Shown here: positions 6,743 through 61,261 of the stretch, one piece after another | Layout: the number at the start of each line of letters is the position of its first letter | Numbering within the stretch: position 1 is the first letter of the stretch | Source of the DNA: Lepidodermella squamata | Lineage: Eukaryota; Animalia; Gastrotricha | Reading direction: 5' to 3' | Assembly: GCA_047495785.1 (NCBI GenBank) | Contig: JBLDXI010000016.1 | Coordinates: 992,001 to 1,056,000, forward strand | Length of the DNA stretch: 64,000 nucleotides | Program-made: the position numbers and the translations under genes | The notes under the pieces: model-generated | What the model was told of the DNA's origin: nothing | Seen by the model: the letters and a program-made list of their open reading frames with translations, nothing else | Databases searched by the model: none

Positions 6743-8686
6743 ATGAAATATTCGCTGTTGGTCTTCAGCTATCAGCTGATAGCTCAAGCCTCTGCCTTTT
6801 TCTGGGGTGAGTTTATTGCTTAAAATATAAAGCTAACAGTTTCATTTTCCAATATTGCCATGAAATGATTTTTTCCAAGGTCCTCCGTACAATCCAGAAC
6901 TCTTTTTTAAGAGTAAGCTTCCACATCATTCGAGATCACTAGATCATTTATTGTCTATATAATTTCCTCAAAATTAATTTTGGTTCATTATTAGATGAAA
7001 AATAGGCTCAAAGAAATATTCCAGCCGCCTTAATTTTATTTAATCGATTTCATTTTTTACAGATCGAAATGCAGGCAATGGATTTTTCAATGGGATTACC
7101 GATGAGCTATTCCCCCAGGAACCTTTCCAGCAACCCTCATTCTACTACCAATCAGACACGAGAGTCACGAATGATAACGTCAACTCGCCTCCGATTATCG
7201 ACCTCAAACAAGCTGAGCCTAAGGTGCAAGCGACCCGAAATGCGAGGCCGGGCGGGTCGATTCTGCCTGGCAATATCTTCCAGCCTGGAATGAAATTGGC
7301 CCAGCAATTAGCACCGGTATTGCCAGTACCCGGTTCTCAACAACAGGCCTCTGAGCTAGTTTTACCGCTTTCGAACCCTCAGCCTACAGTGTATGGGCCG
7401 CTGCCGGATGGCGGTTCCATTTGCCCGGCCGGTTTTCTATGCTGTGATAACGGAGCTGTCTATCGCAATTCTTTCAAGTTGCTGTCGTGCTGTGCCGAGA
7501 ATTCGTTCGATATGCGATTTGAGGCGTGTAACAACGGCGCTGTTGCGCCGCTTCACCCCGGCTCCCCGCCACTCACCCCGGCCGAACGCCTGACGCATAT
7601 CACGTGCGGCGGGAAGCTGTACTTTGGACCGAATGCACTTCGCTGCTGTAACGGGACATTTTACGATTCGACGAAATACGTCTGTTCCATGGGACTGGTG
7701 AGTCGAAATAAATATACGCAAAATTGTAGTCGAAAATGAGGCTATAGAATTAGGAATCAGGTAAAATGATGAACTGTCTTTCGGACTTTAGATCCAGCAA
7801 TTATGGCTCAATGTGAGTTGAGGAAGTTGAAGCATGGTGTTCCAAAAATACACCTGTATATAGTTTATTGCGCAATTTTCGATAAATCACTTTGATTTTT
7901 TAATTTTTTTTCTCATTATTTCTTTCAAAGTATTTTTAATTATTTTTACGAAATTATAGGATCGAGAATAATTTATTTAATTTTTTTTTTTGCTTTATTT
8001 TAACTTGTTCTATTTTTTTTTATTGCGATCTTGGCGATCTTCAAATCGAACATTCAATAGGCATAAATTTACCAGTAAATTTATTTCAATTTATTTTAAT
8101 CAAATTAGGAAATTATGATAATTGATGACTAAAATTGGTGTAATCAAATTTGATTTTCAAAATTTTGAATTTTTTTATTGCGAAGCGCGGATTTATTTTG
8201 ATAATATATTTCGCGAACTATTTTTTTGCGCGCTCATTTTTTCGGCTGACATTTGTTTGGATTTTCTGTTATTTTCAGCCGCGACAGCCCGAATTATGGT
8301 CCGACGTATCTTACGCGTCAAAGGCAACTAAGGAAGAACTGTTCGATCTACCGGACATGTCGGCTGGCCCGAACGGTCCGCAGTACGTCGTCTGCGAAAT
8401 CTATCGCTACAAACTATCTCCCCGCGATCTGTTAAGTTGGGGCTGTTGCGGCGCGCAAATTTACAATTTCAAGCGCGAAAACTGTACGGCCGGCGAAATT
8501 GTTCCGCAACGGTCGCTGAGCCGCCAGAAATCGATACCCATCGGCGAGTTGATGGTCTACTGCAGCGGTGGCGTTCAACATTGGGTTCAGCCGGCGACTC
8601 TGGCCCAAGTCAGGTGTTGCGGCTCTCGGCTATGTCCGATCTATTCTCGGCAACCGCTCGATAAAAATAACAACACCTTGAGCTAA
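6743..8686 (+). CDS. Galaxin-like secreted Cys-Cys repeat protein, paralog 1 (4 exons)
   Basis: Signal peptide MKYSLLVFSYQLIAQASA. In-frame splicing into ORFs 7224-7739 and 8150-8686. Repeated CC-x-G..Y/F-D...C units (LSCCAENSFD, RCCNGTFYD, WGCCGAQIYN). Confidence 0.75.
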
Positions 8687-21788: not shown

Positions 21789-21845
21789 ATTTCCGGTATT
21801 TTTTCCATTCCGCGGTTTTTACGGATTTCATTTTTCGTGATTTTA

Positions 21846-22004
21846 CGGGTGTGGCGCGAACGCCGGTACCCAAGTGAAATATTTTGCACCCGACTCCACC
21901 GATGAGGCAGAGCGCAGGGGTCAGCGGACCGCAGTGCAATGGCCCGCCTCGCCCTGGGGCGACCGACTTGCTGAGCTCGGTTCATCCCAGTGCCAGGTAA
22001 GTTT
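21846..22004 (-). ncRNA. U1: U1 snRNA (variant Sm site)
   Basis: 5' AAACUUACCUGG, U1A loop AUUGCAC, four-way junction colinear with metazoan U1, terminal GCG-UUCG-CGC hairpin; 159 nt. Confidence 0.95.
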
Positions 22005-22120: not shown

Positions 22121-22192
22121 TAGCAGAGCGTAGTTTCGATCTACAGACCTCTGGGTTATGGGCCCAGCGCGCTTCCACTGCGCCACTCTGCT
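22121..22192 (-). tRNA. tRNA-iMet(CAT)
   Basis: AGCAGAGTGGCGCAG..., A1:U72 pair, GGG/CCC anticodon stem, AUCG T-loop. Confidence 0.95.
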
Positions 22193-22261
22193 TGTCTGAA
22201 GAAGGAATGAATTACTCGATCGTTGTTTTTGAAGTTGTCGAGAATTTGAATGAAAAAATGA

Positions 22262-22343
22262 TGGCAGCGGTGGGGTTCGAACCCACGCCTCCGAAGAGAC
22301 TAGAGCCTAAATCTAGCGCCTTAGACCACTCGGCCACGCTACC
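22262..22343 (-). tRNA. tRNA-Leu(TAG)
   Basis: 82-nt cloverleaf with long variable arm. Confidence 0.95.
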
Positions 22344-22496
22344 TTGATAGAAAAATAACCTTGAGAAAAAATCGGAAACTCCAAGTGAAACCTTTGCGAG
22401 CTTTGCGAGCTACTGACCAATGCATTCGGGGAAATTTCTTAATTTTACGTTATTTGCAGCTAATTAATAACGCTGCAGATTGTGGCGGAAAAAGTA

Positions 22497-22569
22497 TGGA
22501 GGATACGGGCGTCGATCCCGTTACCTCTCGCATGCTAAGCGAGCGCTCTACCATTTGAGCTAATCCCCC
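22497..22569 (-). tRNA. tRNA-Ala(AGC)
   Basis: G3:U70, anticodon AGC. Confidence 0.95.
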
Positions 22570-22638
22570 TTCGAGATCTTCGACTTCTTGGCAGCAGGTT
22601 GATCACATAAACGAGGTACTCTCGGTAAAAAAAGCTTG

Positions 22639-22711
22639 CGCCCTCCGGGGGACTCGAACCCCCGACCCTGTGATTAAAAGTCACATGCTCTACCGACTGA
22701 GCTAGGAAGGC
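22639..22711 (-). tRNA. tRNA-Lys(TTT)
   Basis: Cloverleaf, anticodon loop CTTTTAA. Confidence 0.95.
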
Positions 22712-23030
22712 CCTTAGAATGCGAAGCAGATTGATGGCGAATGTGTGAAATCAGCAAAATTGAAATAAAACTGAATCTACTGATTTGCTCTGTCGGTAAT
22801 TAGGGACAACAAAGTGATTGTCCAGCGGCACCTATACAGCTAGATTTACCTATTCGTTGTTTTTTTTCCTAATTCTGCTATTGTTGTTAACAAAAACTAG
22901 ATCCTCTTTCTGTGTCATCGGTCATGCGCTACCTGCAGACCATCGCTTTTATAAAATAAAATGATCATTGTTGTGTTGAAGCCTGCTACTGAAAATTGAA
23001 AATAAACAAAAATAATACAAAAGGAGAAAA

Positions 23031-23103
23031 TGACGCTGATGGGACTCGAACCCACAATCTTCGGATCCGAAGTCCGACGCGATAGCCATTTCGCCACAGC
23101 GCC
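23031..23103 (-). tRNA. tRNA-Arg(TCG)
   Basis: Cloverleaf, anticodon loop CTTCGGA. Confidence 0.9.
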
Positions 23104-23213
23104 TCTCTTATCAGTTGCAGCCTATGGAAGGTTTCAATCTCGCTGTGATTGTGTTTGCTCGAAGCTAAAAAACGGTCTGTTGATTTGCAAATGACCGAAA
23201 GGTTGGTCAAACA

Positions 23214-23297
23214 GTCAGGATGGCCGAGCGGTCTAAGGCGCCAGACTCAAGATCTGGTCCTCGAAAGAGGGCGTGGGTTCGAACCCCACTTCTGACA
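23214..23297 (+). tRNA. tRNA-Leu(CAA), intronless
   Basis: GTCAGGATGGCCGAG..., anticodon loop CTCAAGA. Confidence 0.95.
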
Positions 23298-23355
23298 CCA
23301 TTTTTGACCGACTTTTTCTAGTAATTTCCGATTAATAATGCAAAAAAGTGGCCAC

Positions 23356-23427
23356 TGGAGGCATCGGGGATTGAACCCGAGACCTTCACAATGCGAATGA
23401 GACGCTCTACCACTGAGCTATGCCCCC
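23356..23427 (-). tRNA. tRNA-Ala(CGC)
   Basis: G3:U70, anticodon loop TTCGCAT. Confidence 0.9.
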
Positions 23428-23503
23428 TAGGCTGATCTGATAATTAGTTTAACACTCGTTAGGTCCGCATGAGTGTTGATTGTCTTGCCTAAAAACGTAG
23501 CCA

Positions 23504-23562
23504 AGGTCCCATCGAGAATCGAACTCGAGTCGCTGGATTCAGAGTCCAGAGTGCTAACCGCT
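23504..23562 (-). pseudogene. tRNA-Gln(CTG) pseudogene, 5'-deleted
   Basis: Matches the 50462 gene but lacks the first ~13 nt (5' acceptor strand and part of the A box). Confidence 0.85.
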
Positions 23563-23646
23563 CGAACATTGGCTTCGGCAACGTCAGCTTTAACCTTTAC
23601 TAGTAAAGTGCTTGCTATACTCTTGAACGTGGGCAATAATAACGTG

Positions 23647-23718
23647 TGCGTCAGCCGGGAGTCGAACCCGGATCGGCTGCTTGGAAGGCAACCATGCTGA
23701 CCGTTACACCACTGACGC
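23647..23718 (-). tRNA. tRNA-Gly(TCC)
   Basis: Cloverleaf, anticodon loop CTTCCAA. Confidence 0.95.
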
Positions 23719-23792
23719 CTCATGAATGTGAGGACTATTATCGAAGGGAACTGTTGCAGCATTCAGATATCCAATCAGTTTGCAAAAATGTT

Positions 23793-23874
23793 CGTCGCCA
23801 GTAGGATTTGAACCTACGCGCGGAGACCGCATCTGATTTCTAGTCAGACCCCTTAACCACTCGGGCATAGCGAC
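23793..23874 (-). tRNA. tRNA-Ser(AGA)
   Basis: Long variable arm, G73, anticodon loop CTAGAAA. Confidence 0.95.
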
Positions 23875-24034
23875 TAGCTGAAATACCAGTTGATCAGCTG
23901 GCTCAATATTGCAAGCTACAACATAAAGAAACTTGTATCCTAATTACCCGTGTCACGAATGGCTTCAAATATTTGCCCACTGCCTGCTGAAATTAGTTTG
24001 AGTTTCGGTTTCGCCGTAGCTGATAGCAAAATGA

Positions 24035-24116
24035 TGGCAGCGGTGGGGTTCGAACCCACGCCTCCGAAGAGACTAGAGCCTAAATCTAGCGCCTTAGACC
24101 ACTCGGCCACGCTACC
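24035..24116 (-). tRNA. tRNA-Leu(TAG)
   Basis: Identical to the 22262 copy. Confidence 0.95.
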
Positions 24117-26919: not shown

Positions 26920-29877
26920 GTGACAATGGTAGCCCGATACGAGGGATACGAGATCAGCTTTTCGAAAATAACAAAGGTCCCGTCTTCATCTACTCCGAAT
27001 CGTCGTCGCAATTCATCGATACCAACGAAAACGTGATCGCCTTCACAACGGCCGCCGTTCCAGTGGTCCCGAAATCAGCAGCTCTCGCCGCTGCCGCCCC
27101 ATCGCCTCATCGATCGAGCAGCGCCGTTGTTGTACCAGCGCAACATCGCAACGATCAAATCTCGCCAAGCAATGCCCCTATGGTCCCTGTTTTTCGATCA
27201 TCTAACAATTATTTCAACCCATTCAGCTTCAATTCAGTCGTTAGCCGGCCGATACCCTTCACCTATCACCCTAATTTCATGCCAACTGAGGCGAGTTTCC
27301 TGCCGAAGAAAATCGTGGCCGAAGCGCAGACTCGCGACGTTTTCCAACTTCGCCAAGCTAACCCAGTCAACGTACCAGACCCGGCAACCTCGACAATAAT
27401 CACCCCGTCCGGCGTGCAAATACCCGTTCATCACATGAAATCACTCAACCGGAACGACCAACTTACTGGCCACGAAACAAATTCCCTCATCTTCGGCCCG
27501 CTGCCGTCTACGATAAGCGTTTGCCCGCAAGATTTCCTGTGCTGTGAAGAAGGAGCTGTCTATCGAAATCACTACAACATTTTACAATGTTGCGGCGTTG
27601 AATCGTTCGATAACAGGTATGAAGCGTGTGTAGCAGGCGGTGTGGCGCCCTTGAAAGAGGGCATGCCTCGCTTGACACCAGCAGCTCGCCTTCAGCAAGT
27701 TTTCTGCGGTCCGGATAACGAGTTGTACTTTGCGCCAACTCTCTACCGATGCTGCAACGGGACCTTTTACGATTCATCGAAATTTCGCTGCTCTGAGTCC
27801 GGAAAAATGGTTAGATTTACATTGTTCTCGACAGTTTAAACATTCAACCAACCGGGTAAAAAAAATTGGAAATGTTTTAATTTTATATCAGAATTTAAAT
27901 TTCAAATTTCAAATTATTTCAAAACTTGACACTGAGCATAAACTATAATTTATATTTGAAGTGCGCTACTGCGAAAAGCATGCAATATAACAATTGCGGC
28001 AATTCATGTGGATTTTTTTCAAATTAATCAGAAATGTCCCGAAAAGCTTGAAAAGGCATTATTGGGTGAATTGTTAATTAAAATGTTAGTTCCAAAACGG
28101 GAATTCGGTTCCTATAAAATGTTGATCCAATGAAGTTTTTTAATTAATAATTAATTAGTCTAACAATTTTTCAATTTTTTAGAAGCTTTTTTTAATTTTT
28201 CACATTTTAATTTTAATTTTAATTTTAAAATATTTCTTTTAGACGACCAAGATTATCGCAACGACCACACCTGAGATGACTACTACAACGGCTGAGCCAA
28301 CTACCGCAATAATGTTGCTATCAACACGAAAAACGCGCCGAGTTGCGTCTCAAAGGCCGAAAAATTCCGAAATGGTGAACTCCTCTGAAAATCCGAGTCG
28401 GCGAAAGGGACGCTATCCGCACCACAGCCATGCGAGGCGGTTTCCGCACGGGCTAGATGCGAAATCGCGCCGAGTGGCCTCGGTTCAGAGTGAGGTTGGA
28501 GCGGTTAATAAAACGCGCGGCAAACGCGAGTACATTGTGTGCGAAATGTATCGCTATCCTATTACGTATCGAGGCCTTCGAACGTGGGGCTGCTGTGGAC
28601 AGCAGTTGTTCAACTATAAAATGGTAAATTTTAATACAAAAATCGCAAATTTCCACAATTCTGTTAATTGATAAATCCTACATCCCAACTTTTTCCATTT
28701 TCATGACAGAGTATAGGGGACTTTATTTGTTGCCGGATTTCTCAAAGCTGTCTGAAGACTGGGAATGCAAATTTAGCAACTCTGTAGACTCGCTATACCC
28801 TGATCAGTTTTATATAAAAAATATCAAGCTCAAGTTTTGTGTTGTAGAAATTAGTTCATCCTCATTAATTCGTTCTTTCTCGGGTCTGAGGTTAGAAAGG
28901 AGAATATTCTCGCAAAATATTTCAGCCTAAAATTCCTAATTCCCTTATTACTGATGCTCGAAATATACTATTTATGATGGAAATTGCGCATTTTTCAAAT
29001 GAATGAATGGTGTACAAAGTGCGCAATAACACATTTTCGCTCGTTAAGTCGACCTAATTTTCGAATCTAGATCGATGGAAGCTGCATGAAGGTCCCGCAA
29101 CTTTGATGGCTTTACAGGGCGCTATTCTTTAAAACGGAGACATCGGAATAGCGTCGAAAATGAATTTTTTCTCTCACTCTTTTCATTTGATCTTGGCGTA
29201 AATTTCATTTTTTCTAACTCGAGACTGATGGCTATTGTTTAAGGTGATAGCTATTGCTTGTTTTTCGCCATATTCGCATCATTTTTCCAACCGGCCGAGT
29301 TCAAAGTTTTACGATAACTCTATCTTCAGCTCAATCCGTCGACCCAGTTAATTTTTCTCATATTTTATCAAGCTAATTTTTCACTGTTTTCGCGCGAATT
29401 TTTTGAATTTTTACTTATTTTTAGTTCGCTGTAGCGCATTTTAACCATTAAAATTGTGATCCTACTCGCGGTAATTATTGTTTTTGTTTGTCTTCTTTTA
29501 CAAGGAAAATTGCACCGAAGGTGAGATAGTAAAAACATCCTATTCGCAAAAGTTACAACGTCCGCCGGGCGAACTCATGGTCTACTGTTCCGGAGGCATC
29601 CAGCACTGGATAGACCCGGCCAACCTCATGCAGGTATTATTAAAAATGCTCGATTTTTATCAACCCTTAATTTAACATTTTTTAGACACGTTGTTGCGGA
29701 TCCAAGCTGTGCCCAAGGCTTGGCAAAGTTCCAGAATCAGAGATCAGCCTAAATGACCCGATGGTGATTGAAAATAATACTGAAATTGACAAAATCTCGG
29801 ATGAATCTGACTACGAAATCACTGACGGCGATTTATCAGACGATGATGAGTGGAAAAGAAAACTGAAAGTGCTGTGA
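26920..29877 (+). CDS. Galaxin-like Cys-Cys repeat protein, paralog 2 (5' exon not resolved)
   Basis: Exons about 26920-27809, 28243-28623, 29504-29632 and 29686-29877. Same FLCC/LQCCG/RCCNGTFYD/WGCCGQQ/GELMVYC/RCCG blocks as paralogs 1 and 3. Confidence 0.75.
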
Positions 29878-31981: not shown

Positions 31982-33040
31982 ATGATCCGGGAACTTATCG
32001 TCGCCGCCGTCCTTATCGGCGCCTGCTCTGCTCAAAACAACGGTAAGTCTTATTGATTCCTTACTAAATCGTTGAATTTCTCTCACGTTGATAGCTGATA
32101 ACACAGCCCAGTCATCAGATGACGGCACCATCCCGTTCTTGTCGCGTTTCCTCCGGCCTTCGAACCCGAGCAACTTCGCCAACCCCGCTCAGCCCGCCGT
32201 CCAAGCTGCCCAAGCCGCTGTCCAGCAGGCCGTTCAGAACCCGGTCCAAAACGCCGTTCAGTCGAGCGTGTCCTCCATCCTGCCAGCCCCGACTGCCTCG
32301 AACGTCTACGGCCCGGTCGAGACCAACTGGTCGACGTGCCCGCTCGGCTTCCTGTGCTGCCAACAATCCGTCTACAAGGACACTTACAAGCTGTTGGCGT
32401 GCTGCAACGACGACTCGTACGACACGCGCTTCCAGAAGTGCCAGCAGGGCGTCATCCTGCCATTGGTCGCCGGCATGCCAACCCCGACCCCGGCCGAGCG
32501 TCTGATCCGCATCAACTGCGGCGGCTACTTGTACATCACGACCGACACGCACCGCTGCTGCAACTTCGCCGTCTACGACCCGGACACGCAGATGTGCATC
32601 TCCGGCACCGTTCAGAACCGCCCGTCGCCGCAACAGGCGCCGCTGCCCCTCGGCTCCGTCTACGTCGTGTGTGCCAGCTACCGCTTCTTGTTGTCGACGC
32701 AAGCGACACTCACTTGGGGCTGCTGCGGCCAGCAGTTGTACAACTACAACAGCGAGAACTGCACGTCAGGCATCGTCGACCCGCCACGCTCCGCCAGCCA
32801 GGATGCGCAGGTGCCCAAGGGCGAGCTCATGATCTTCTGCACCGGCAAGCGCCACTGGATCGACCCCGCCAATCTTTACACGGTTAATAAAAAAAAATCC
32901 ACCTTAATTATTTTGATTTTAATAATGTAATGTTTTTTTCGCAGACCCGCTGCTGTGGAACCGAGATCTGCCCTCTGCAATCAGCTCCGACCGTACTGGC
33001 TCCCAACCAAACACCAGTACAGCCGGCGGTGAACCAATAG
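31982..33040 (+). CDS. Galaxin-like secreted Cys-Cys repeat protein, paralog 3 (3 coding exons)
   Basis: Signal peptide MIRELIVAAVLIGACSA; introns 32043-32094 and 32884-32944; CC repeats; very strong C/G-ending codon bias. Confidence 0.8.
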
Positions 33041-34373: not shown

Positions 34374-34445
34374 AGCAGAGTGGCGCAGTGGAAGCGCGCT
34401 GGGCCCATAACCCAGAGGTCTGTAGATCGAAACTACGCTCTGCTA
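34374..34445 (+). tRNA. tRNA-iMet(CAT)
   Basis: Identical to the 22121 copy. Confidence 0.95.
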
Positions 34446-34560
34446 ACTGTCGCAATATTTTTAAAAAGAATTTCGATGAAAAAGGAATAACCAAATGACT
34501 TCAGCATCCACTTATGGTCAAACTGTCAAGTGGGGCCGATCGCGTGGACCTTTGGCCACT

Positions 34561-34719
34561 AAACTTACCTGGCACTGGGATGAACCGAGCTCAGCAAGTC
34601 GGTCGCCCCAGGGCGAGGCGGGCCATTGCACTGCGGTCCGCTGACCCCTGCGCTCTGCCTCATCGGTGGAGTCGGGTGCAAAATATTTCACTTGGGTAAC
34701 GGCGTTCGCGCCACACCCG
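34561..34719 (+). ncRNA. U1: U1 snRNA (variant Sm site)
   Basis: AAACTTACCTGG...ATTGCAC...GCGTTCGCGC; same structure as the 21846 copy. Confidence 0.95.
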
Positions 34720-35261
34720 TAAAATTACAAACAAGTAACTTCAAATCGTGTAGCGTCAATATCTTCCCGACGTTTTTTGAAACCGGCTACTTTTGCGCAT
34801 TCGATGTTTCCGCTCAGATTTAAATTATAGAACATATATTTATCCTAATTATTCATTTGAAATTTGCACCCCGACTTTTGTTTAACGTCAATTTTCGTGA
34901 TTTTATATTTTTTCAATACGGCATTTCCCTTCCAACAGTTGTTCATTAAAAATAATTATTAATTCGAAATGATTTTTCATAATTTCCATGTCGCCAAACA
35001 CTTGCGCACTTATGCCGCGAGGTTATTGCAATCGAGTTGGAAGTTATTAGGTCTTGGGAACTAGCCCGACGAAATCGCGGGTGATAGGTCCACGTCCAAA
35101 GAAGTAGTTCAGCTCCCTTCGCAACGCGTTGTGGCTACATTCAGCCTACACCAGAAAAAAATCAACCTAATCGGCTTTTAGCTTGTGAATTCCCCTCAAT
35201 TAGGGCCTTGGGAGTATCCTAATACACCGATTTTCAAAATGTATCTGAGTTCTTGCTCAAA

Positions 35262-38213: not shown

Positions 38214-38295
38214 GGTAGCGTGGCCGAGTGGTCTAAGGCGCTAGATTTAGGCTCTAGTCTCTTCGGAGGCGTGGGTTCGAACCCCACCGCTGCCA
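38214..38295 (+). tRNA. tRNA-Leu(TAG)
   Basis: Identical to other copies. Confidence 0.95.
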
Positions 38296-38457
38296 TCATT
38301 TTGCCATCGGTCAAGGCGAAGCCGAAACTCGAACTAATTTCAGCAGGCAATGGACAAATATTTGAAGTCATTCATGACTCGGGGTAATTAGGATACAAGT
38401 TTTGTTTATGTTGCAGACAAGTTTATTCAGCCAGCTGGTCAACTGATATTTCAGCCA

Positions 38458-38539
38458 GTCGCTATGCCCGAGTGGTTAAGGGGTCTGACTAGAAATCAGA
38501 TGCGGTCTCCGCGCGTAGGTTCAAATCCTACTGGCGACG
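38458..38539 (+). tRNA. tRNA-Ser(AGA)
   Basis: Identical to the 23793 copy. Confidence 0.95.
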
Positions 38540-38616
38540 AACATTTATGCAAACTGATTGTTAGAAAGCTAAATACCGCAACAGTTGGCTTCAAGAACAG
38601 TCCGCGCTTTCACCAG

Positions 38617-38687
38617 GCGTCAGTGGTGTAACGGTCAGCATGGTTGCCTTCCAAGCAGCCGATCCGGGTTGACTCCCGGCTGACGCA
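38617..38687 (+). pseudogene. tRNA-Gly(TCC) with T-loop C deletion
   Basis: GGGTTGACTCCC instead of GGGTTCGACTCCC; the invariant B-box C is missing. Confidence 0.7.
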
Positions 38688-38775
38688 CACGTTTTTACAG
38701 CACACGCTTGATACTACCAAACGCATTACTACATTAAAGATTGAAGGTGATCTTGCCCTTAACAGTGTTCGAAAA

Positions 38776-38839
38776 GGTCCCATGGTTAGCACTCTGGACT
38801 CTGAATCCAGCGACTCGAGTTCGATTCTCGATGGGACCT
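38776..38839 (+). pseudogene. tRNA-Gln(CTG) pseudogene, 8-nt D-arm deletion
   Basis: CCATGGTTAGC versus intact CCATGGTGTAGCGGTTAGC. Confidence 0.85.
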
Positions 38840-38912
38840 TGATATGTTTTTTTCTAACAAACTTGGGATCCTTGAAGTTACCATGCTGCGAACCTTTTAT
38901 TGTACTAGCCTA

Positions 38913-38984
38913 GGGGGCATAGCTCAGTGGTAGAGCGTCTCATTCGCATTGTGAAGGTCTCGGGTTCAATCCCCGATGCCTCCA
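38913..38984 (+). tRNA. tRNA-Ala(CGC)
   Basis: Identical to the 23356 copy. Confidence 0.9.
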
Positions 38985-39044
38985 GTTGGCCACTTTTTAG
39001 CATTCCTAATCGGTATTTACTGAGAAAAAGTCGGTCAAAAATAG

Positions 39045-39128
39045 TGTCAGAAGTGGGGTTCGAACCCACGCCCTCTTTCGAGGACCAGATCTTGAGTCTG
39101 GCGCCTTAGACCGCTCGGCCATCCTGAC
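39045..39128 (-). tRNA. tRNA-Leu(CAA)
   Basis: Identical to the 23214 copy. Confidence 0.95.
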
Positions 39129-39227
39129 TGCTTGACCAACCTTTCGAGCATTTGCAAATCAACATGCTGTTTCTAGCTTCGAGCAATCACAATCAGAACG
39201 AGCTTGAAGCCTTGAACTGATAAGAGA

Positions 39228-39300
39228 GGCGCTGTGGCGAAATGGCTATCGCGTCGGACTTCGGATCCGAAGATTGTGGGTTCGAGTCCCATCAGCGTCA
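39228..39300 (+). tRNA. tRNA-Arg(TCG)
   Basis: Identical to the 23031 copy. Confidence 0.9.
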
Positions 39301-39420
39301 TTTGCTCCTTTTGTTTTATTTTTGTTTATTTTCAGTAGCACGCTTCAAAAGCCAACGTATTTTTATTTCTAATTTTGCTGATTTCGGACATTGACCAACA
39401 ATTTGGCTCTCATATCACGG

Positions 39421-39493
39421 GCCTTCCTAGCTCAGTCGGTAGAGCATGTGACTTTTAATCACAGGGTCGGGGGTTCGAGTCCCCCGGAGGGCG
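39421..39493 (+). tRNA. tRNA-Lys(TTT)
   Basis: Identical to the 22639 copy. Confidence 0.95.
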
Positions 39494-39568
39494 CAATCAT
39501 TTTTACCCAAAGTAACTTGCTTATGGGAAGTAACTTGCTAATGCTGCTAAGATGACGAAGATCTCGAA

Positions 39569-39641
39569 GGGGGATTAGCTCAAATGGTAGAGCGCTCGCT
39601 TAGCATGCGAGAGGTAACGGGATCGACGCCCGTATCCTCCA
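39569..39641 (+). tRNA. tRNA-Ala(AGC)
   Basis: Identical to the 22497 copy. Confidence 0.95.
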
Positions 39642-45483: not shown

Positions 45484-45642
45484 AAACTTACCTGGCACTG
45501 GGATGAACCGAGCTCAGCAAGTCGGTCGCCCCAGGGCGAGGCGGGCCATTGCACTGCGGTCCGCTGACCCCTGCGCTCTGCCTCATCGGTGGAGTCGGGT
45601 GCAAAATATTTCACTTGGGTATCGGCGTTCGCGCCACACCCG
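45484..45642 (+). ncRNA. U1: U1 snRNA (variant Sm site)
   Basis: Same structure as the other copies. Confidence 0.95.
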
Positions 45643-46229
45643 TAAAATTTTAAGAAAAATATATGTCTCACTTTTACTTGGTTCTTATCAAAACTTCGAA
45701 AGTAATATACCGGATTTGTTCCAATTTTAGCCCAGGGTTGAGGGGCCAAGTCGGTTCGAAAGTATGAAAAATGAACGAGTAATTAACGATTAATTAACGA
45801 TTAATTAATTAAGGAATCGTTCACTTTTTATACTTTCGAACCGAATTGACGTTAATTAGTTAGTTAATTAATTTTCGAGTTTACCAAAATTTGAAGGTTG
45901 AAATTTTTGTAGCCCGGGCTGCTATAGGAACAACTATGAGAATATTAACAGGCTAATTGCACTGATTCATTCCTATCATTTTTTCACTCGGAACTACCGT
46001 GTACCAGAAATGCTACTCACTTACGATGCCTTTGGAAATACGTAAGATTATGTAATACCCTAATACGTTTGTATTTTATCTTCATCTCCATGCTAGTCTA
46101 ATCTGGCTCAGTGGGGAATGAGTCACATAGTTTGGCACCTACTATATCAACCTGCATGTTTGTGGAAAAGTTCAAGCATCACGTTTTATTAGTTTCAGTC
46201 GACAAGGCGAAAGCATTTTTCAAGCACGA

Positions 46230-48210
46230 ATGCTACAACCACTAAGGAACGTCTTTTATTCTACTCTCATTATCAGTGCGATTTTTCCTCCAACGACTGA
46301 AGCAATCGAACTGCCTCTAGCATGTGTGACTAACACTACGCTCGACCAGTGGATGACCAACTTACCTGCCAGGCTACGCGATCTGCCTCTGACAAAACTG
46401 GCTATTCCTGGATCCTATGCAGCGTTTTCAAGTACCCTAAACCCCAGCCTCGGCCGAGATTATACCATCGACCGCGATTTGATGCCATTTCAGCTGTCTC
46501 GACGCATCAATGACGACTTGATGAACTGCAGGCTGGAGCAATGGGGCATATCTCAGGAACAAACCATTTTCGACCAGCTGTACCTTGGCATCCGGTATTT
46601 CGACCTTCCAATCGCAGCTCGCAACCCGGACTATTACATGGTTAATGACAACAAGATTTACTTTACCAGCTATATTCATCAGTCTATGCCGGAGATGTTT
46701 GGCGACATGAGAGATTTCTTGAATATGAACCCTGGCGAGGTTGTTATACTGAACTTCAATAATTTCGACAGCATGACTCAGCAGCAGCATGTCGCGTTTC
46801 TGAAGAAGCTCTACATCAACTTTGGATACGATATGTTCGCGAAGCCTAGCGATTACCCTGATGGACCGAGTTCCATGAGTTTGAGCAACATGACAGCTGC
46901 GGGCCATCAAATAATCATTTTTTACGACAAGGCAACTGGGCCGGCTAGTTCTATAGCTTGGCGGGGTGATGCAATTAGTGGAAGCGAGGCTTCCTACACG
47001 GAACAAACAGGGCTTGAAGTCAATTGGGCTGAGGTAATTAATTGATTAATTAATCCATATTTTTTAAATTTTTACTCCCATCGAAATAAAAAAATCTGAA
47101 AATTAAACCAGAGGTGGGATGGAAATATCTGATCTTTCTTGAAATTTTAGAAATGCTTCTATTTTAATGGAATCTAGCATTTGGGAATAAGGTATCATTC
47201 AAGAATCGCACGAATCGTTCGGACGCTCATTTGAATATATTTTAATGACCTCATGACTCTCAAAACGTAAAGAAGGAATGAGCGGCTTTAACTCTGGGTC
47301 TTACTTTTAGCGGAATCAAATTTTGGAATTTTCATTTGGCATAAAACCAATTTTAGAAACATTCTAAGATGTCATGATTGATCGGCATAATTGTAAATAA
47401 ATCATCTCAAAATTCAACGTGAAATTCTGTGTTGGACACATTTTTTCCTATTGAATTTACTCTCTGCCATAATTTCGTGGAAATATTCAAGAAGCGACCT
47501 TTGGCTTATCTAGAACTATAGGTTCGCAACATGCAACCAATTCCGCAACGGGCAAAAAATATTCTGCTTTTAATTAAAAAAATGCAATTACTTGTTGTCG
47601 CGAATTCGAAAAGATTTTAAATCTGAATCTCAGGTTAAAATTGGCTCGTAGTAGCGGGTCCTCAATAAGCATCCCGAATTGCATCCCAAATTTTAACCGA
47701 AACGCCATTTATAGGTTATTTCCGAAAATTTATCAGCCTCCAATTTTACAAATTGTTGTCTTTTTACTGAACTTACAGGCCGTTCGGTCGCGACCGGCTG
47801 ATGACACCAATTTGTTCGTCTTGCCTGGTGTAATGGTACCTTCAATTGGGCTGTTTGAGGATAAATTATTGATGCAACCTGGCAGCTATTTGGGGCAAAT
47901 GGGCGCGTGCACGACCAGCAAGTTTGTAAAATGGATCAAAGCGAATCGTCTAGCGGCAAGTAGTGGAAAAATCAACATATTTATGGCGGCGTTTGTTCAC
48001 TACTACAATTTTTTCGGCGAGATCATCGCGTTGAACTACGCGGACGAGGCGAAACCTGTCGCAGCCGCGGATCTAACGGCGAGTTATTGCATTCGGCAAC
48101 CGACGTTTTATGCGTGCAGTAATGAACTCGGTGATGGTGATATGTGCTCGAAATATGATACTGGGGAGTACTATACAAATTTTCCAAGATCAAGTCTCAT
48201 AAATGTTTAG
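46230..48210 (+). CDS. Secreted PLCXD-like protein, paralog 4 (2 exons)
   Basis: Exons 46230-47033 and 47779-48210; signal peptide; AIPGSYA and GIRYFDLP motifs. Confidence 0.85.
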
Positions 48211-49898: not shown

Positions 49899-49980
49899 GG
49901 TAGCGTGGCCGAGTGGTCTAAGGCGCTAGATTTAGGCTCTAGTCTCTTCGGAGGCGTGGGTTCGAACCCCACCGCTGCCA
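49899..49980 (+). tRNA. tRNA-Leu(TAG)
   Basis: Identical to other copies. Confidence 0.95.
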
Positions 49981-50141
49981 TCATTTTGCTATCAGCTACG
50001 GCGAAACCAAAACTCAAACTAATTTCAGCAGGCAGTGGACAAATATTTGAAGTCATTCGTGACTCGGGGTAATTAGTAATGAGGTTTCTTTATGTTATAG
50101 CCAAGTATATTGAGCCAGCTGGTCAACTGGTATTTCAGCAA

Positions 50142-50223
50142 GTCGCTATGCCCGAGTGGTTAAGGGGTCTGACTAGAAATCAGATGCGGTCTCCGCGCGT
50201 AGGTTCAAATCCTACTGGCGACG
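50142..50223 (+). tRNA. tRNA-Ser(AGA)
   Basis: Identical to other copies. Confidence 0.95.
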
Positions 50224-50297
50224 ACAGTTTTTGCAGATTGACTGGAAATTTGAAATCAGCAGCACCTCGCTTCCAGAACAGTCCCCACATTCATGAG

Positions 50298-50369
50298 GCG
50301 TCAGTGGTGTAACGGTCAGCATGGTTGCCTTCCAAGCAGCCGATCCGGGTTCGACTCCCGGCTGACGCA
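50298..50369 (+). tRNA. tRNA-Gly(TCC)
   Basis: Intact cloverleaf. Confidence 0.95.
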
Positions 50370-50461
50370 CACGTTTTTACAGCACACGCTTGAGAGTAGC
50401 GAACACATTGCTTGGAGAGGTTAAAGGTTAAAGCTGATCTTGCCCTTAACAGTGTTCGAAA

Positions 50462-50533
50462 GGTCCCATGGTGTAGCGGTTAGCACTCTGGACTCTGAAT
50501 CCAGCGACTCGAGTTCGATTCTCGATGGGACCT
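50462..50533 (+). tRNA. tRNA-Gln(CTG)
   Basis: Intact cloverleaf. Confidence 0.95.
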
Positions 50534-50616
50534 TGGCTACGTTTTTTGGGCAAGAGAACAAACACTCATGTGCGACAAGTCCCAACCAGTGTTAATCTAG
50601 TAGGCAGGTCGGCCTA

Positions 50617-50688
50617 GGGGGCATAGCTCAGTGGTAGAGCGTCTCATTCGCATTGTGAAGGTCTCGGGTTCAATCCCCGATGCCTCCA
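50617..50688 (+). tRNA. tRNA-Ala(CGC)
   Basis: Identical to other copies. Confidence 0.9.
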
Positions 50689-50745
50689 GTTGGCCACTTT
50701 TTCACATTATTAATGGGAAATTAAAAGCAAAAAGTCGTAAAATGG

Positions 50746-50829
50746 TGTCAGAAGTGGGGTTCGAACCCACGCCCTCTTTCGAGGACCAGATCTTGAGTCT
50801 GGCGCCTTAGACCGCTCGGCCATCCTGAC
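50746..50829 (-). tRNA. tRNA-Leu(CAA)
   Basis: Identical to other copies. Confidence 0.95.
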
Positions 50830-50938
50830 TGCTTGACCAACCTCTCGATTATTTGCAAATCAACACACTGTTTCTAGCTTCGAGCAATCACAATCAGAGC
50901 GAGCTTGAAACCTTCCATTGGCTGCAGCTGATAAGAGA

Positions 50939-51011
50939 GGCGCTGTGGCGAAATGGCTATCGCGTCGGACTTCGGATCCGAAGATTGTGGGTTCGAGTCC
51001 CATCAGCGTCA
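50939..51011 (+). tRNA. tRNA-Arg(TCG)
   Basis: Identical to other copies. Confidence 0.9.
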
Positions 51012-51142
51012 TTTGCTCCTTTTGTACTATTTTTGTTTTTGTTTGTACTATTTTCAGTAGCATGCTTCAAAAGCCAACGTATTTTTATTTCTTATTTTGC
51101 TGATTTCGTACATTGACCAACAATTTGCCTCTCATATCACGG

Positions 51143-51215
51143 GCCTTCCTAGCTCAGTCGGTAGAGCATGTGACTTTTAATCACAGGGTCGGGGGTTCGA
51201 GTCCCCCGGAGGGCG
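51143..51215 (+). tRNA. tRNA-Lys(TTT)
   Basis: Identical to other copies. Confidence 0.95.
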
Positions 51216-51279
51216 CAATAATTTTTACCCAAAGTAACTTGTAACTTGCTAATGCTGCTAAGATGACGAAGATCTTGAA

Positions 51280-51352
51280 GGGGGATTAGCTCAAATGGTA
51301 GAGCGCTCGCTTAGCATGCGAGAGGTAACGGGATCGACGCCCGTATCCTCCA
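51280..51352 (+). tRNA. tRNA-Ala(AGC)
   Basis: Identical to other copies. Confidence 0.95.
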
Positions 51353-51506
51353 CAACTTTTTCGGCTAGCGAGTAAGATAAGATAAGATAAGCAAAACAAA
51401 TGATGAGAGGACTTGACACTCAAATATTTGAGCATTTGGATGTCTTCCGTCCCTTTTTATAACGCCATCATCAAACAGGATGAACATTTAGAAGGTTAAA
51501 AAAAAG

Positions 51507-55659: not shown

Positions 55660-57113
55660 CTAGTTATCTATAAGACTTGATCTTTGCACATTTGAATAGT
55701 ATCCGCCATTTTCATATTTCGAGCACGCGTCAAATGGATATAATCGAGTATATCCTAGTTTGCGGCACTCAAAAAACCTCGGCTCCTGAATGCAATAACT
55801 CGCCGTTAGACCCGCGGCTGCGACAGGTTTCGCCTCGTCCGCGTAGTTCAACGCGATGATCTCGCCGAAAAAATTGTTGTAGTGAACGAACGCCGCCATA
55901 AATATGTTGATTTTTCCACTACTTGCCGTGAGACGATTCGCTTTGATCCATTTTACGAACTGGCTGGTAGTGCAAGCGCCCATTCGCGTAAAATAACCGC
56001 TACGTCCTACCACCAATTCATCATGTAACAGCCTCATTGAAGGTTCCGTCACACCACATATGACAAAGAATTTGTTGTCATTGGCTGGTCGCGACCTAAC
56101 GGCCTGCAATTTTGAAACAAAAATGTTACCTTAAAATTTCTACTGTAACGTAAAAAATTTGCTAAAAATCTAGTAAAAATGGGAAATTTTATAAAATTTC
56201 AGAGAAATTCAGATATTGTCCAGCCTCTGGTTTAATTTCCGACGCAAAATTTAAAAACATGTATTAAAAAGAATGTGATTACTTCTGTCCAATTTTCCTC
56301 AAGCTCCGTTAGCTCCGTGTATGAAGCCTCGCTTCCACGAATTGCATCACCCCGCCAAGCTATGGAACTAGCTGGCCCAGTTGCCTTGTCGTAAAAAAGG
56401 ATTATTTGATGTCCCGCAGCTGTCATGTTTCTCAGGCTCATCGAACTCGGCCCATCAGGGTAATCGCTAGGCTTCGCGAACTTATCATATCCAAAGTTGA
56501 TGTAGAGCTTCTTCAAAAAAGCGACATGCTGCTGCTCAGTAATGCTCTCGAAATCATTGAAATTCAGTATAATAACCTCGCCAGGATTCATATTCAAGAA
56601 ATCCCTCATGCCGCCGAACACACTCAGGTCGCCAAACATCTCTGGCGAAGACTGATGAAGATAGTTGGTAAAGTAAATCTTGTTGTCATTAACCCCTAAA
56701 TATTCAGGGTTGCGAGCTGCGATTGGAAGGTCGAAATACCGGATGCCAAGGTACAGCTGGTCGAAAATGGTATGTTCCTGAGCTTTGCCCCATTGCTCCA
56801 GCCTGCAGTTCATCAAGTCGTCATTTACGCGCTGAGACAGCTGAAATGGCATCAAATCGCGGTCAATGGTATAAACTCGGCCGAGACGGGGGTTTAGGGC
56901 TCTTGAAAAAGCTGCGTAGGCCCCTGGAATAGCAAGTTTTGTCAGTGGCAGATCGCGTAGCCTGGCAGGTAAGTTGGTCATCCACCGATCGAGTGTTGTA
57001 TTCGTCGTACATCTTAAAGGCAGTTCGGCTGCATCAGTCGTTAGAGAAAATAAAATCGCACTGATAATGAGAGTAGAATAAACAAAATGCATCAACATTG
57101 ATAGTGCTGGCAT
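55660..57113 (-). CDS. Secreted PLCXD-like protein, paralog 5 (2 exons)
   Basis: Exons 57113-56283 and 56103-55660; AIPGAYA and GIRYFDLP motifs. Confidence 0.85.
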
Positions 57114-57451
57114 TTGTGATGAAAAATGCTGAAGTTGAGCCGACGTGATGCTTTGTTAAATCTTTCGAGATGCATGCTCGTGGGTTTCAAGATGTGACTC
57201 ATGTTACCACGCAGAACTAAACTAGAATAGCCTGAGATAAAGGCAGATAACACGAAATAAATATTTAATGTTTCACGTACCTTCGGGGTCATGAAAATAT
57301 GATATAAGGGTTAAGGGTTGGCATATTTCTAGCAACTAAGGTCGGATCCGGGACCTGGTTTAGCAACCGACTGCGGTGCGCTGTGGCCATCGCATTTTCG
57401 GGTTTTGAAAGGCTTTCACTTCCTTGCGGATTTCATTTTCTATTGCTTTTC

Positions 57452-57610
57452 CGGGCGTGGCGCGAACGCCGTTACCCAAGTGAAATATTTTGCACCCGAC
57501 TCCACCGATGAGGCAGAGCGCAGGGGTCAGCGGACCGCAGTGCAATGGCCCGCCTCGCCCTGGGGCGACCGACTTGCTGAGCTCGGTTCATCCCAGTGCC
57601 AGGTAAGTTT
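57452..57610 (-). ncRNA. U1: U1 snRNA (variant Sm site)
   Basis: Same structure as the other copies. Confidence 0.95.
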
Positions 57611-57866: not shown

Positions 57867-57951
57867 TGGCAAGCGGTGGGGTTCGAACCCACGCCTCCGA
57901 AGAGACTAGAGCCTATAAATCTAGCGCCTTAGACCACTCGGCCACGCTACC
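57867..57951 (-). pseudogene. tRNA-Leu(TAG) variant with 9-nt anticodon loop and acceptor-stem insertion
   Basis: Loop TTTATAGGC (2 nt extra) and 3' strand CGCTTGCCA (1 nt extra). Confidence 0.75.
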
Positions 57952-58948: not shown

Positions 58949-60546
58949 CTAGTTATCTATAAGACTTTTTCTCGGGAAATATGTAAAATACTCCTCAGTT
59001 TTATAATCCGAGCACTCATCACTATCATTGTCTTGATTCCTGCACACAAGAAACGTCGGCTGCCGAATGCAATAAATCGCCGTTAGATCCGCAGCGCTGA
59101 CAGGTTTCATCGCCTCGCCCGCGTAGTTCAACGCGATAACCTCGCCGAAAAAATTGTTGTAGTGAACGAACGCCGCCATAAATATGTTGATTTTTCCACT
59201 ACTTGCCGTGAGACGATTCGCTTTGATCCATTTTACAAACTTGCTGGTCGTGCACGCGCCCATTTCCGTCAAATAATTGACAGGTTCCAGCAATATTCCA
59301 CCCTGCAACATCCCAATTGAAGGTACCATCACACCACGTAAGACAAATAGGTTTTTGTCATCATCTCGTCGCGATCTAACGGCCTGTAATTCCGGTGAAA
59401 AAAAATATTCCACCTATAAAATTGTATCGTAACGTGGAAAGTGTAGTTTGGAATACATAGCTCAGGGTAATTTGAGGTTGATTCAGCATTTTCTACTTTT
59501 GTTTGTTAATTTGACCTATTTTCGAGTGTCATGAGGTTCAATATTCAAATGAGCAACAATCCGTCCAATGTTAGGCGAATAGGCTCAAATTAGCTAAAAA
59601 TCGAGTACAAATTTCCTAACTTTCAGAGAAAATAAGATTTTGTCGAGCCTATACCTCTGGTTTAATTTTTTGGAGAACAGCTGATTTTAAAAAATTGAAA
59701 AACAGCGACTAATTATAATGTAATTACTTCGGTCCACTTTGGTTCAAGGTCCGTTAGTTCCGTGTAGGCCTCGCCTCCACTAATTGCATCAGCCTGCCAA
59801 GCTATGGAACTAGCTGGCCCAGTTGCCATGTCGTAAAAAATTATTATTTGATGTCCCGCAGCTGTCATGTTGCTCAAACTCATCGAACTCGGTCCATCAG
59901 GGTAATCGCTAGGCTTCGCGATCTTATCATATCCAAAGTTGATGTAGAGCTTCTTCAGAAACGCGACATGCTGCTGCTGAGTCATGCTGTCGAAATTATT
60001 GAAATTCAGTATAACAATCTCGCCAGGGTTTATATTCAAGAAATCTCTCATGCCGCCGAACAAGCCGAACTCGCCGAACATGTCCGGAATAGACTGATGA
60101 AGATAGTTGGTCAAGTAAACCTTGTTGTCATTAACCGCGTAATAGTCCGGGTTGCGAGCTGCGATTGGAAGGTCGAAATACCGGATGCCAAGGTACAGCT
60201 GGTCGAGAATGGTATGTTCCTGAGCTTTGCCCCATTGCTCCAGCCTGCAGTTCATCAAGTCGTCATTTACGCGCTGAGACAGCTGAAATGGCATCAAATC
60301 GCGGTCAATGGTATAAACTCGGCCGAGACGGGGGTTTAGGGCACTTGAAAAAGCTGCGTAGGATCCAGGAATAGCAAGTTTTGTCAGTGGCAGATCGCGT
60401 AGCCTGGCAGGTAAGTTGGTCATCCATTGTTCAAGCGTAGTGTTCGTCGTACATCTTAAAGGCAGTTCGTTTGCATCAGTCGTTGGAGGAAAAATCACAC
60501 TGATAATGAGAGAAGAATAAAAGACGTTCCTTAGTGGTTGTAGCAT
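58949..60546 (-). CDS. Secreted PLCXD-like protein, paralog 6 (2 exons)
   Basis: Exons 60546-59728 and 59383-58949; AIPGSYA and GIRYFDLP motifs. Confidence 0.85.
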
Positions 60547-61102
60547 TCGTGCTTAACAAATGCTTCAACCAAGTCGACAGAAACTAAACCATCATGCTTG
60601 TACTTTTCCAAAGGCATGCAGGTTGTAGTAGGTGCCAAACTATGTGACTCATTCCCCGCTGAGCCAGATTAGACCAGCATGAGATGAAGATTTAGTACAA
60701 ATAATTTACGTATTTCCGATGTCATTGAAATAAAGTTCTAGCATTTATGGTCGTTCTGAGTGGAAAAAGGTGTCCATTTAATGATCGGTGCAATTAGACT
60801 GTTGATAATATAACCGTATTTGTTCCTATTACGGCCCGAGCTACTGAAATTCAACCTCGAAATTTTGAAAAAATTCAAAATTGAAACAATAATTGTCGGT
60901 GAATCGTTCATTTTTAGTGATTTTGAACCGACTTGACTCTCAACCTCAACCCTCGGCTTACCATTAGGGATGGGCGATTATTATCGACTATTTTTGATAG
61001 CCTGAGCTATTTTTCGACACAATAAGGTGTAGTATTTCAGGAAGTTGAGTAATGTTCGAAAACAACCAATTAAAAATGACACCTATATTTTTCGTAATTT
61101 TA

Positions 61103-61261
61103 CGGGTGTGGCGCGAACGCCGATACCCAAGTGAAATATTTTGCACCCGACTCCACCGATGAGGCAGAGCGCAGGGGTCAGCGGACCGCAGTGCAATGGC
61201 CCGCCTCGCCCTGGGGCGACCGACTTGCTGAGCTCGGTGCATCCCAGTGCCAGGTAAGTTT
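61103..61261 (-). ncRNA. U1: U1 snRNA (variant Sm site)
   Basis: Same structure; one A>C change in stem I. Confidence 0.95.

Follow-up and report, generated by a model that had tools for sequence, protein, structure and literature searches.

An off-consensus Sm site and a changed loop I in five U1 snRNA genes of a small invertebrate

Known Sm-class RNAs and the U1 genes of the window

Canonical metazoan U1 snRNA (RF00003; for human U1, PMC4383343) is an RNA of about 160 nt that carries the 5' splice-site recognition arm ACUUACCUG, a four-way junction, the AUUGCAC loop and a stem-loop IV with a UUCG loop, all of which recur in the genes described here. The published consensus of its Sm nonamer is PuAUUUNUGPu (PMC11965559), and the bases of the Sm heptad have been mapped to the pockets of the ring that hold them (PMC4383343). 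During assembly Gemin5 reads mainly an adenine and three uridines (AUUU), to which the last three bases of the site add little (PMC5131778); in vitro the Sm core assembles on almost any short uridine stretch (PMC2582628), and U1 has in addition an extra, U1-70K-assisted route to the Sm core (PMC12390936). Loop I of the human complex contains the stacked C31 and A32, U30 and a stack of A35-A36-G37, and A29 forms only the loop-closing A:A pair (PMC4383343).

Three further systems are close enough to the present case to be compared with it. The Sm site of U7 snRNA is occupied by a ring with Lsm10 and Lsm11. U7 resembles the RNA studied here in being of the Sm class and in having a site that keeps the start of adenine and uridine without the G-purine end, but it is a guide for histone processing, whereas the window RNA is a full U1 by its fold and its 5' arm. 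The U2 and U4 snRNPs of trypanosomatids (PMC13601561, PMC2582628) likewise contain spliceosomal snRNAs with a degenerate Sm site; there, variant proteins have been demonstrated, and on U2 and U4, whereas the present case concerns U1. Human variant U1 (vU1) snRNAs, finally, likewise belong to a U1 family of many copies whose sequences vary, in part at protein-binding sites, yet they are minor forms that accompany a canonical main U1, while the odd form of the window is the dominant one.

The window, by which we mean the whole stretch of 64,000 nucleotides that was analysed, contains exactly five full-length U1 snRNA genes (cmscan, RF00003), in agreement with the five copies counted in an earlier note on this DNA; beyond these five, a permissive scan of the window returned no U1-like or other snRNA match. 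The copies have a body of about 160 nt and score 99.9-103 bits over model positions 1-166, where the gathering score is 69.5. The copy that the earlier note describes lies at 34561-34720 on the forward strand (101.9 bits, model positions 1-166) and a second forward copy at 45484-45643 (102 bits), and three copies are on the reverse strand, at 21845-22004 (103 bits), at 57451-57610 (99.9 bits, changed at nt 155 and nt 160 of the 3' end) and at 61102-61261 (101.3 bits, with C at nt 23). Score, fold, 5' arm and U1A loop all place the five in the U1 family; because they have common descent, their unanimity does not amount to five independent observations.

In order to compare the window genes with other U1s, we fetched the latter with a pattern that touches neither the Sm site nor loop I. 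Nine comparison U1s were retained, two from a metagenome (L001, L002) and seven from bacterial genome bins (L003, L006, L008, L010, L014, L017, L025); they are 57-68% identical to the window U1, and none is a close relative, those from the bins being U1s of unrelated animals. A metagenome scan for relatives gave two distant U1s only, a viral scan for U1 relatives gave none, and a literature search on rotifer or bdelloid U1 found no paper. Two further sequences, L012 and L020, were left out of the alignment; they come from a Metamycoplasmataceae genome-bin contig, have a vertebrate-grade U1 score and may be DNA of a vertebrate host, perhaps human, that entered a mycoplasma-like genome bin. More generally, eukaryotic U1 genes occur on contigs filed under bacterial species, in some cases together with U2, 5S rRNA or histone 3' stem-loops, and L014, filed as Bdellovibrionales, contains a 2716-bp tandem repeat with a U1 and a histone 3' stem-loop. 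These U1-bearing contigs in bacterial genome bins are eukaryotic contaminants.

The minimum-energy fold of the window U1 shows helix H, stem-loops I-III as a four-way junction and stem-loop IV with its UUCG loop (34694-34718, forward strand), the last also covered by the RF00003 match, and it leaves the Sm region unpaired. In the alignment of 12 U1s, compensatory changes support 22 of the 37 consensus pairs, and the pairing is preserved in the window copies. The earlier note had called the 5' arm and the U1A loop canonical, and both are indeed present and invariant in the five copies. The arm ACUUACCUG (34563-34571, forward strand) is unchanged in 11 of the 12 aligned rows, the exception being L008 with ACUUACUUG, and the stem-loop II loop AUUGCAC, the U1A site (34625-34631, forward strand), is identical in all 12. 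Base 2 of the window U1 is A, unlike in human U1 and as in some other invertebrate U1s that were fetched.

Sm region and loop I

Between helix H and stem-loop IV lies the single-stranded Sm region AAAAUAUUUCACUU (34680-34693, forward strand), which is unpaired in the minimum-energy fold and, as had been claimed, the same in all five copies: a 25-base pattern across it matched each copy with zero mismatches and matched none of 100 shuffles. The region sits at the same place as in human U1, with 14 instead of 15 nt unpaired, and its place is conserved; two adenines and a uridine stand at its start, followed by a run of three uridines. A register scan yielded AAUAUUUCA (34682-34690, forward strand) as the best nonamer, with two mismatches to PuAUUUNUGPu: the fourth base is A where U is expected and the eighth is C where G is expected, which are also the two bases that set it apart from the human nonamer AAUUUGUGG. 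The window U1s therefore lack the strict Sm nonamer. A second register, UAUUUCACU, which keeps the AUUU read by Gemin5, was rejected, as it has four nonamer mismatches against two and leaves no spacer before stem-loop IV.

Since the fourth U and the eighth G of the nonamer are invariant in the nine other U1s and stand in upper case in the Rfam consensus, the Sm-site change in the window U1 reads as one that is not trivial. Elsewhere in the nonamer the other U1s are less uniform. Their sites follow [A/C][A/G]UUU[G/U/A/C]UG[G/C/U], and five of the nine miss PuAUUUNUGPu by one or two bases (two each in L001-L003, one each in L010 and L025); as bona fide U1s fetched here miss it too, the strict nonamer is typical of the U1 family and not defining for it. 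This also qualifies the comparison with AAUUU(G/U)UG made previously, in which the interrupted U-tract and the missing G stand, while the sixth base turns out to be A or C as well in other U1s. The three U1s with two mismatches (L001 724-880, L002 943-1102 and L003 123-281) share the Sm site AGUUUUUG[C/U], in which the second nonamer base is G and the ninth a pyrimidine, and constitute another natural departure from the consensus.

We consider it likely that the form found in the window is the main U1 of its lineage and that its Sm site has drifted within the tolerance of Sm-core assembly. The five genes would then encode the ordinary, main U1 snRNA of a small invertebrate, an RNA predicted to fold as a four-way junction plus stem-loop IV, in which ACUUACCUG would pair with 5' splice sites and AUUGCAC would bind U1A. 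The Sm ring would most likely sit on AAUAUUUCA, whose spacing from helix H and from stem-loop IV is the usual one. This register would agree with the U4-type heptad AAUUUUU at six of the seven bases held in ring pockets; A would replace U in the SmD3 pocket, and a C would stand in place of the G normally found between SmD1 and SmD2. As assembly needs little beyond an adenine and a short U-run by a stem-loop, and as U1 can also use the U1-70K-assisted route, we infer that the site works with essentially standard Sm proteins.

The invariance of both deviant positions in nine U1s, together with their mapping to defined pockets (PMC4383343), also speaks for a changed Sm recognition in the lineage, by means of co-evolved pockets (SmD3, SmD1/SmD2) or of snRNA-specific Sm paralogues on U1, although we hold such a change to be unlikely. 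Trypanosomatid U2 and U4, with their degenerate Sm sites and lineage-specific Sm proteins (PMC13601561, PMC2582628), provide a precedent for it, and the U7 snRNP, whose Sm site in human is non-canonical (PMC11965559), provides another. Against it, the U1 Sm sites of other organisms wander by one or two bases without known changes in the proteins. The Sm site of U4 in the same genome, putatively ACUUUCUGG, would bear on the matter in two ways: an odd U4 site would favour a lineage-wide change, but its deviation would lie at other positions than that of U1, which fits a loosened specificity better than a re-tuned pocket. An animal lineage with degenerate Sm sites in its snRNAs (U1 and, putatively, U4), brought about by altered pockets or snRNA-specific Sm paralogues, is in our estimate distinctly unlikely. 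If the Sm proteins had changed, the case would be the first of an animal with a variant Sm core on a major spliceosomal snRNA, and if Sm recognition had changed, it would be a metazoan counterpart of the variant Sm cores of trypanosomatids.

On present evidence the gene family is ordinary, apart from a modest sequence peculiarity of its lineage. If the window RNA is a working U1, an animal Sm ring can sit on an interrupted uridine run without a closing G, and the natural range of Sm sites widens; motif filters, it should be cautioned, would call such U1 genes pseudogenes. The family would also offer a cheap natural test case of which Sm-site bases matter in vivo.

Loop I, the putative U1-70K site, reads GCUCAGCAAG (34589-34598, forward strand) and is invariant in the five copies. 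It keeps the UCA core and the AAG, and its second base is C, as opposed to A in the nine other U1s; the loops of the latter all begin with GAUCA and continue with CG, AG, GC, GG, GU, AC or CC, and that of L001, GAUCAGCAAG, is one base away from the window loop. The positions that match human C33 and G34 are freely variable among the nine, and once these two free positions are allowed for, GCUCAGCAAG keeps nine of the ten bases of the GAUCANNAAG type, a count that compares sequences only. The altered U1-70K loop claimed before is thus borne out in part: all five copies carry GCUCAGCAAG and the change from A to C at the second base is unusual, but the other two differences lie at free positions. 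With respect to the human complex, the equivalents of C31, A32, U30 and A35-A36-G37 are retained and that of A29 is lost, a C replacing the A of the loop-closing A:A pair. In the RNA, the stacked UCA core and the AAG stack would accordingly be expected to persist, with only the A of this closing pair gone, and we think that a standard ring and a standard U1-70K would bind the window U1, perhaps less tightly.

Constraint on the copies and their occurrence in public runs

The near-identity of the copies despite diverged spacers, noted earlier, is confirmed by alignment of the five. Mean pairwise identity is 98.8% over the U1 body (4 of 160 columns variable) and 85% over the spacer (35 of 115), and falls to 22% over the 3' flank from +21 to +100, where 77 of 80 columns vary and the sequences are not alignable. 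Within the spacer, the part from -50 to -1 is 91.6% identical between copies and the distal part 80%. The four variable U1 positions are nt 23 in a bulge, nt 139 in the internal loop of stem-loop IV, and nt 155 and 160 at the 3' end. None of the 14 columns of the Sm region varies, where about four would be expected at the spacer rate (chance about 0.007 if columns are independent). A comparison with neighbouring coding sequence points in the same direction, as the U1s next to three paralogous genes are 97.5-99.4% identical, against 88-92% in DNA for those genes.

The contrast of the U1 body with spacer, flank and paralogous genes supports the suggestion, likewise made in the earlier note, that purifying selection or homogenisation acts on the copies. 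The two are inseparable with five related copies; decay is excluded. It is this inability of five copies to tell homogenisation from selection, along with the position of the U1s in segmentally duplicated tRNA/U1 blocks, that would allow the genes to be seen as inactive passengers of tRNA clusters that duplicate, with gene conversion as the sole cause of their likeness. We consider this very unlikely, in view of an identity that peaks on the U1 body and proximal promoter and drops in both flanks, of the confinement of the four differences to bulge, internal loop and 3' end, of helices that are all intact in the window copies, and of a compensatory change from A:U to G:C at 34588/34599 in variant contigs of one public run (X2).

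At base 34699 (nt 139, in the internal loop of stem-loop IV), three alleles, A, U and C, occur among the five copies, and in run X1 the change A>C at this base accounts for about half of the depth. In an RNA that is otherwise constrained, this base seems to drift freely.

Contigs of four public runs were compared with positions 34450-34800; being contigs, they cannot show expression. Variants in the runs were listed only from a tenth of depth upward, and U1s less than 80% alike were left out. The U1 body was found in the contigs of all four runs, and within 34680-34693 every alternative letter stays below 10% of depth in each of them, though six unlisted differences in record 10 of run X2 could fall in the Sm region. 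One environmental contig (X3) differs nearby, with one base missing at 34694, and keeps the Sm region. This U1 type occurs in pond, biofilm and wastewater runs; the four runs seem to represent the same or closely related organisms, so that the phylogenetic depth is small. In run X1 the depth over the U1 body is 25-40 times that of the flanks, but contig depth cannot rank gene parts and is not read here as expression.

Loop I is less uniform in these contigs. Minor variants in X1 and X2 have 34590 C>A, which gives GAUCAGCAAG, or 34594 G>T with 34595 C>G, which gives GCUCAUGAAG; the GCUCAUGAAG variant carries the compensatory 34588 A>G and 34599 T>C in the closing pair (run X2). The presence of A and C forms at the odd loop I position in the same runs argues against a U1-70K tuned strictly to C.

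Such minor sequence variants in X1 and X2, and the fact that animals do carry U1 variant families, could suggest that the window holds a specialised variant U1, stage-specific or serving only some introns, while a canonical main U1 is encoded elsewhere. We find this very improbable: over the Sm region, at least nine tenths of the contig depth in the four runs belong to the window form, five copies are found in the window alone, and the 5' arm is fully canonical. The earlier note had left the choice between a co-evolved Sm ring and U1-70K and a specialised variant U1 snRNP. Its premise of constrained U1s with an off-consensus Sm site and loop I is upheld, but the specialised variant is unlikely, and tolerated drift fits better than either option because five of nine other U1s miss the nonamer, because A variants occur at loop I, and because U1 has a U1-70K-assisted route to the Sm core.

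Transcription unit and gene surroundings

At all five copies a tRNA-Met(CAT) gene precedes U1 at a distance of 115 bp; for the copy at 34561-34720 it lies at 34374-34445 on the forward strand (ARAGORN; Rfam tRNA, 55.2 bits). A run of five T follows tRNA-Met within about 12 bases, so the tRNA unit should end before U1. The intervening 115-bp spacer (34446-34560, forward strand), identified by alignment of the copies, is the presumed U1 promoter. Two stretches of it stand out: CTTATGGTCMAACTG, at about -50 to -36, is conserved, and positions -29 to -1 are invariant. The spacers of the aligned copies have no TATA-like run around -30. Downstream, the copies have in common an A-rich 3' flank (AAAAT..A.AAAA; 34721-34740, forward strand), 60% identical against 22% further on, which is possibly a 3' box for end formation, whereas T runs 3' of U1 lie at +5, +26, +53 or +98, or are absent.

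On the strength of the five-T run after tRNA-Met, the conserved spacer blocks, the missing TATA-like run and the inconsistent downstream T runs, each U1 is probably its own unit, with a TATA-less promoter in the spacer that serves RNA polymerase II. Each gene would in this arrangement form a separate unit behind tRNA-Met.

Other modes of transcription were considered and rejected. Polymerase III or tRNA-driven transcription, with the U-run broken against termination, is contradicted by the five-T run that tRNA-Met has of its own, and polymerase III transcription of U1 by the lack of a TATA-like run near -30 and by downstream T runs that are inconsistent or absent. Moreover, the broken U-run does not call for an explanation as termination avoidance, since canonical U1 sites with G as the sixth base are likewise without four T in a row.

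The region around the U1 copies contains about 42 tRNA genes, and at three copies tRNA-Leu(TAG) also precedes U1. About eight tRNA genes, always in the order Leu-TAG, Ser-AGA, Gly-TCC, Ala-CGC, inverted Leu-CAA, Arg-TCG, Lys-TTT, Ala-AGC, make up a module with three occurrences, at 22121-24116 on the reverse strand and at 38214-39641 and 49899-51353 on the forward strand; only the first continues into tRNA-Leu, tRNA-Met and U1. A weak tRNA at 57868-57951 on the reverse strand (39 bits; Tyr with anticodon ATA according to ARAGORN) stands where three other cassettes have tRNA-Leu(TAG), and is probably a decayed tRNA-Leu.

Three of the U1s are followed, at a distance of 340-590 bp, by genes paralogous to one another, at 46230-47045 on the forward strand and at 59713-60546 and 56232-57113 on the reverse strand. 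Two of them, compared as proteins, share 84% identity; the three genes have a signal-peptide-like start and no Pfam match. Their presence beside three U1s indicates that whole blocks of tRNA-Met, U1 and gene were duplicated. Near-matches to the U1 5' arm at 46360, 56964 and 60406 are not U1 fragments; they encode Asn-Leu-Pro-Ala in these paralogous genes.

Of the remaining coding content, an exact look-up of eleven window ORFs gave no match, nor did a protein search with two ORFs besides a galaxin-like one. Galaxin-like cysteine-repeat ORFs are found at 7224-8686, 27033-27839 and 32088-32930, and the last of these has relatives, 52-81% identical, in Logan and JGI data, all on contigs of less than 2 kb. 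Among the ORFs of the window, a Cys-loop receptor, a SOCS box and the galaxin-like repeats mark this DNA as that of an animal.
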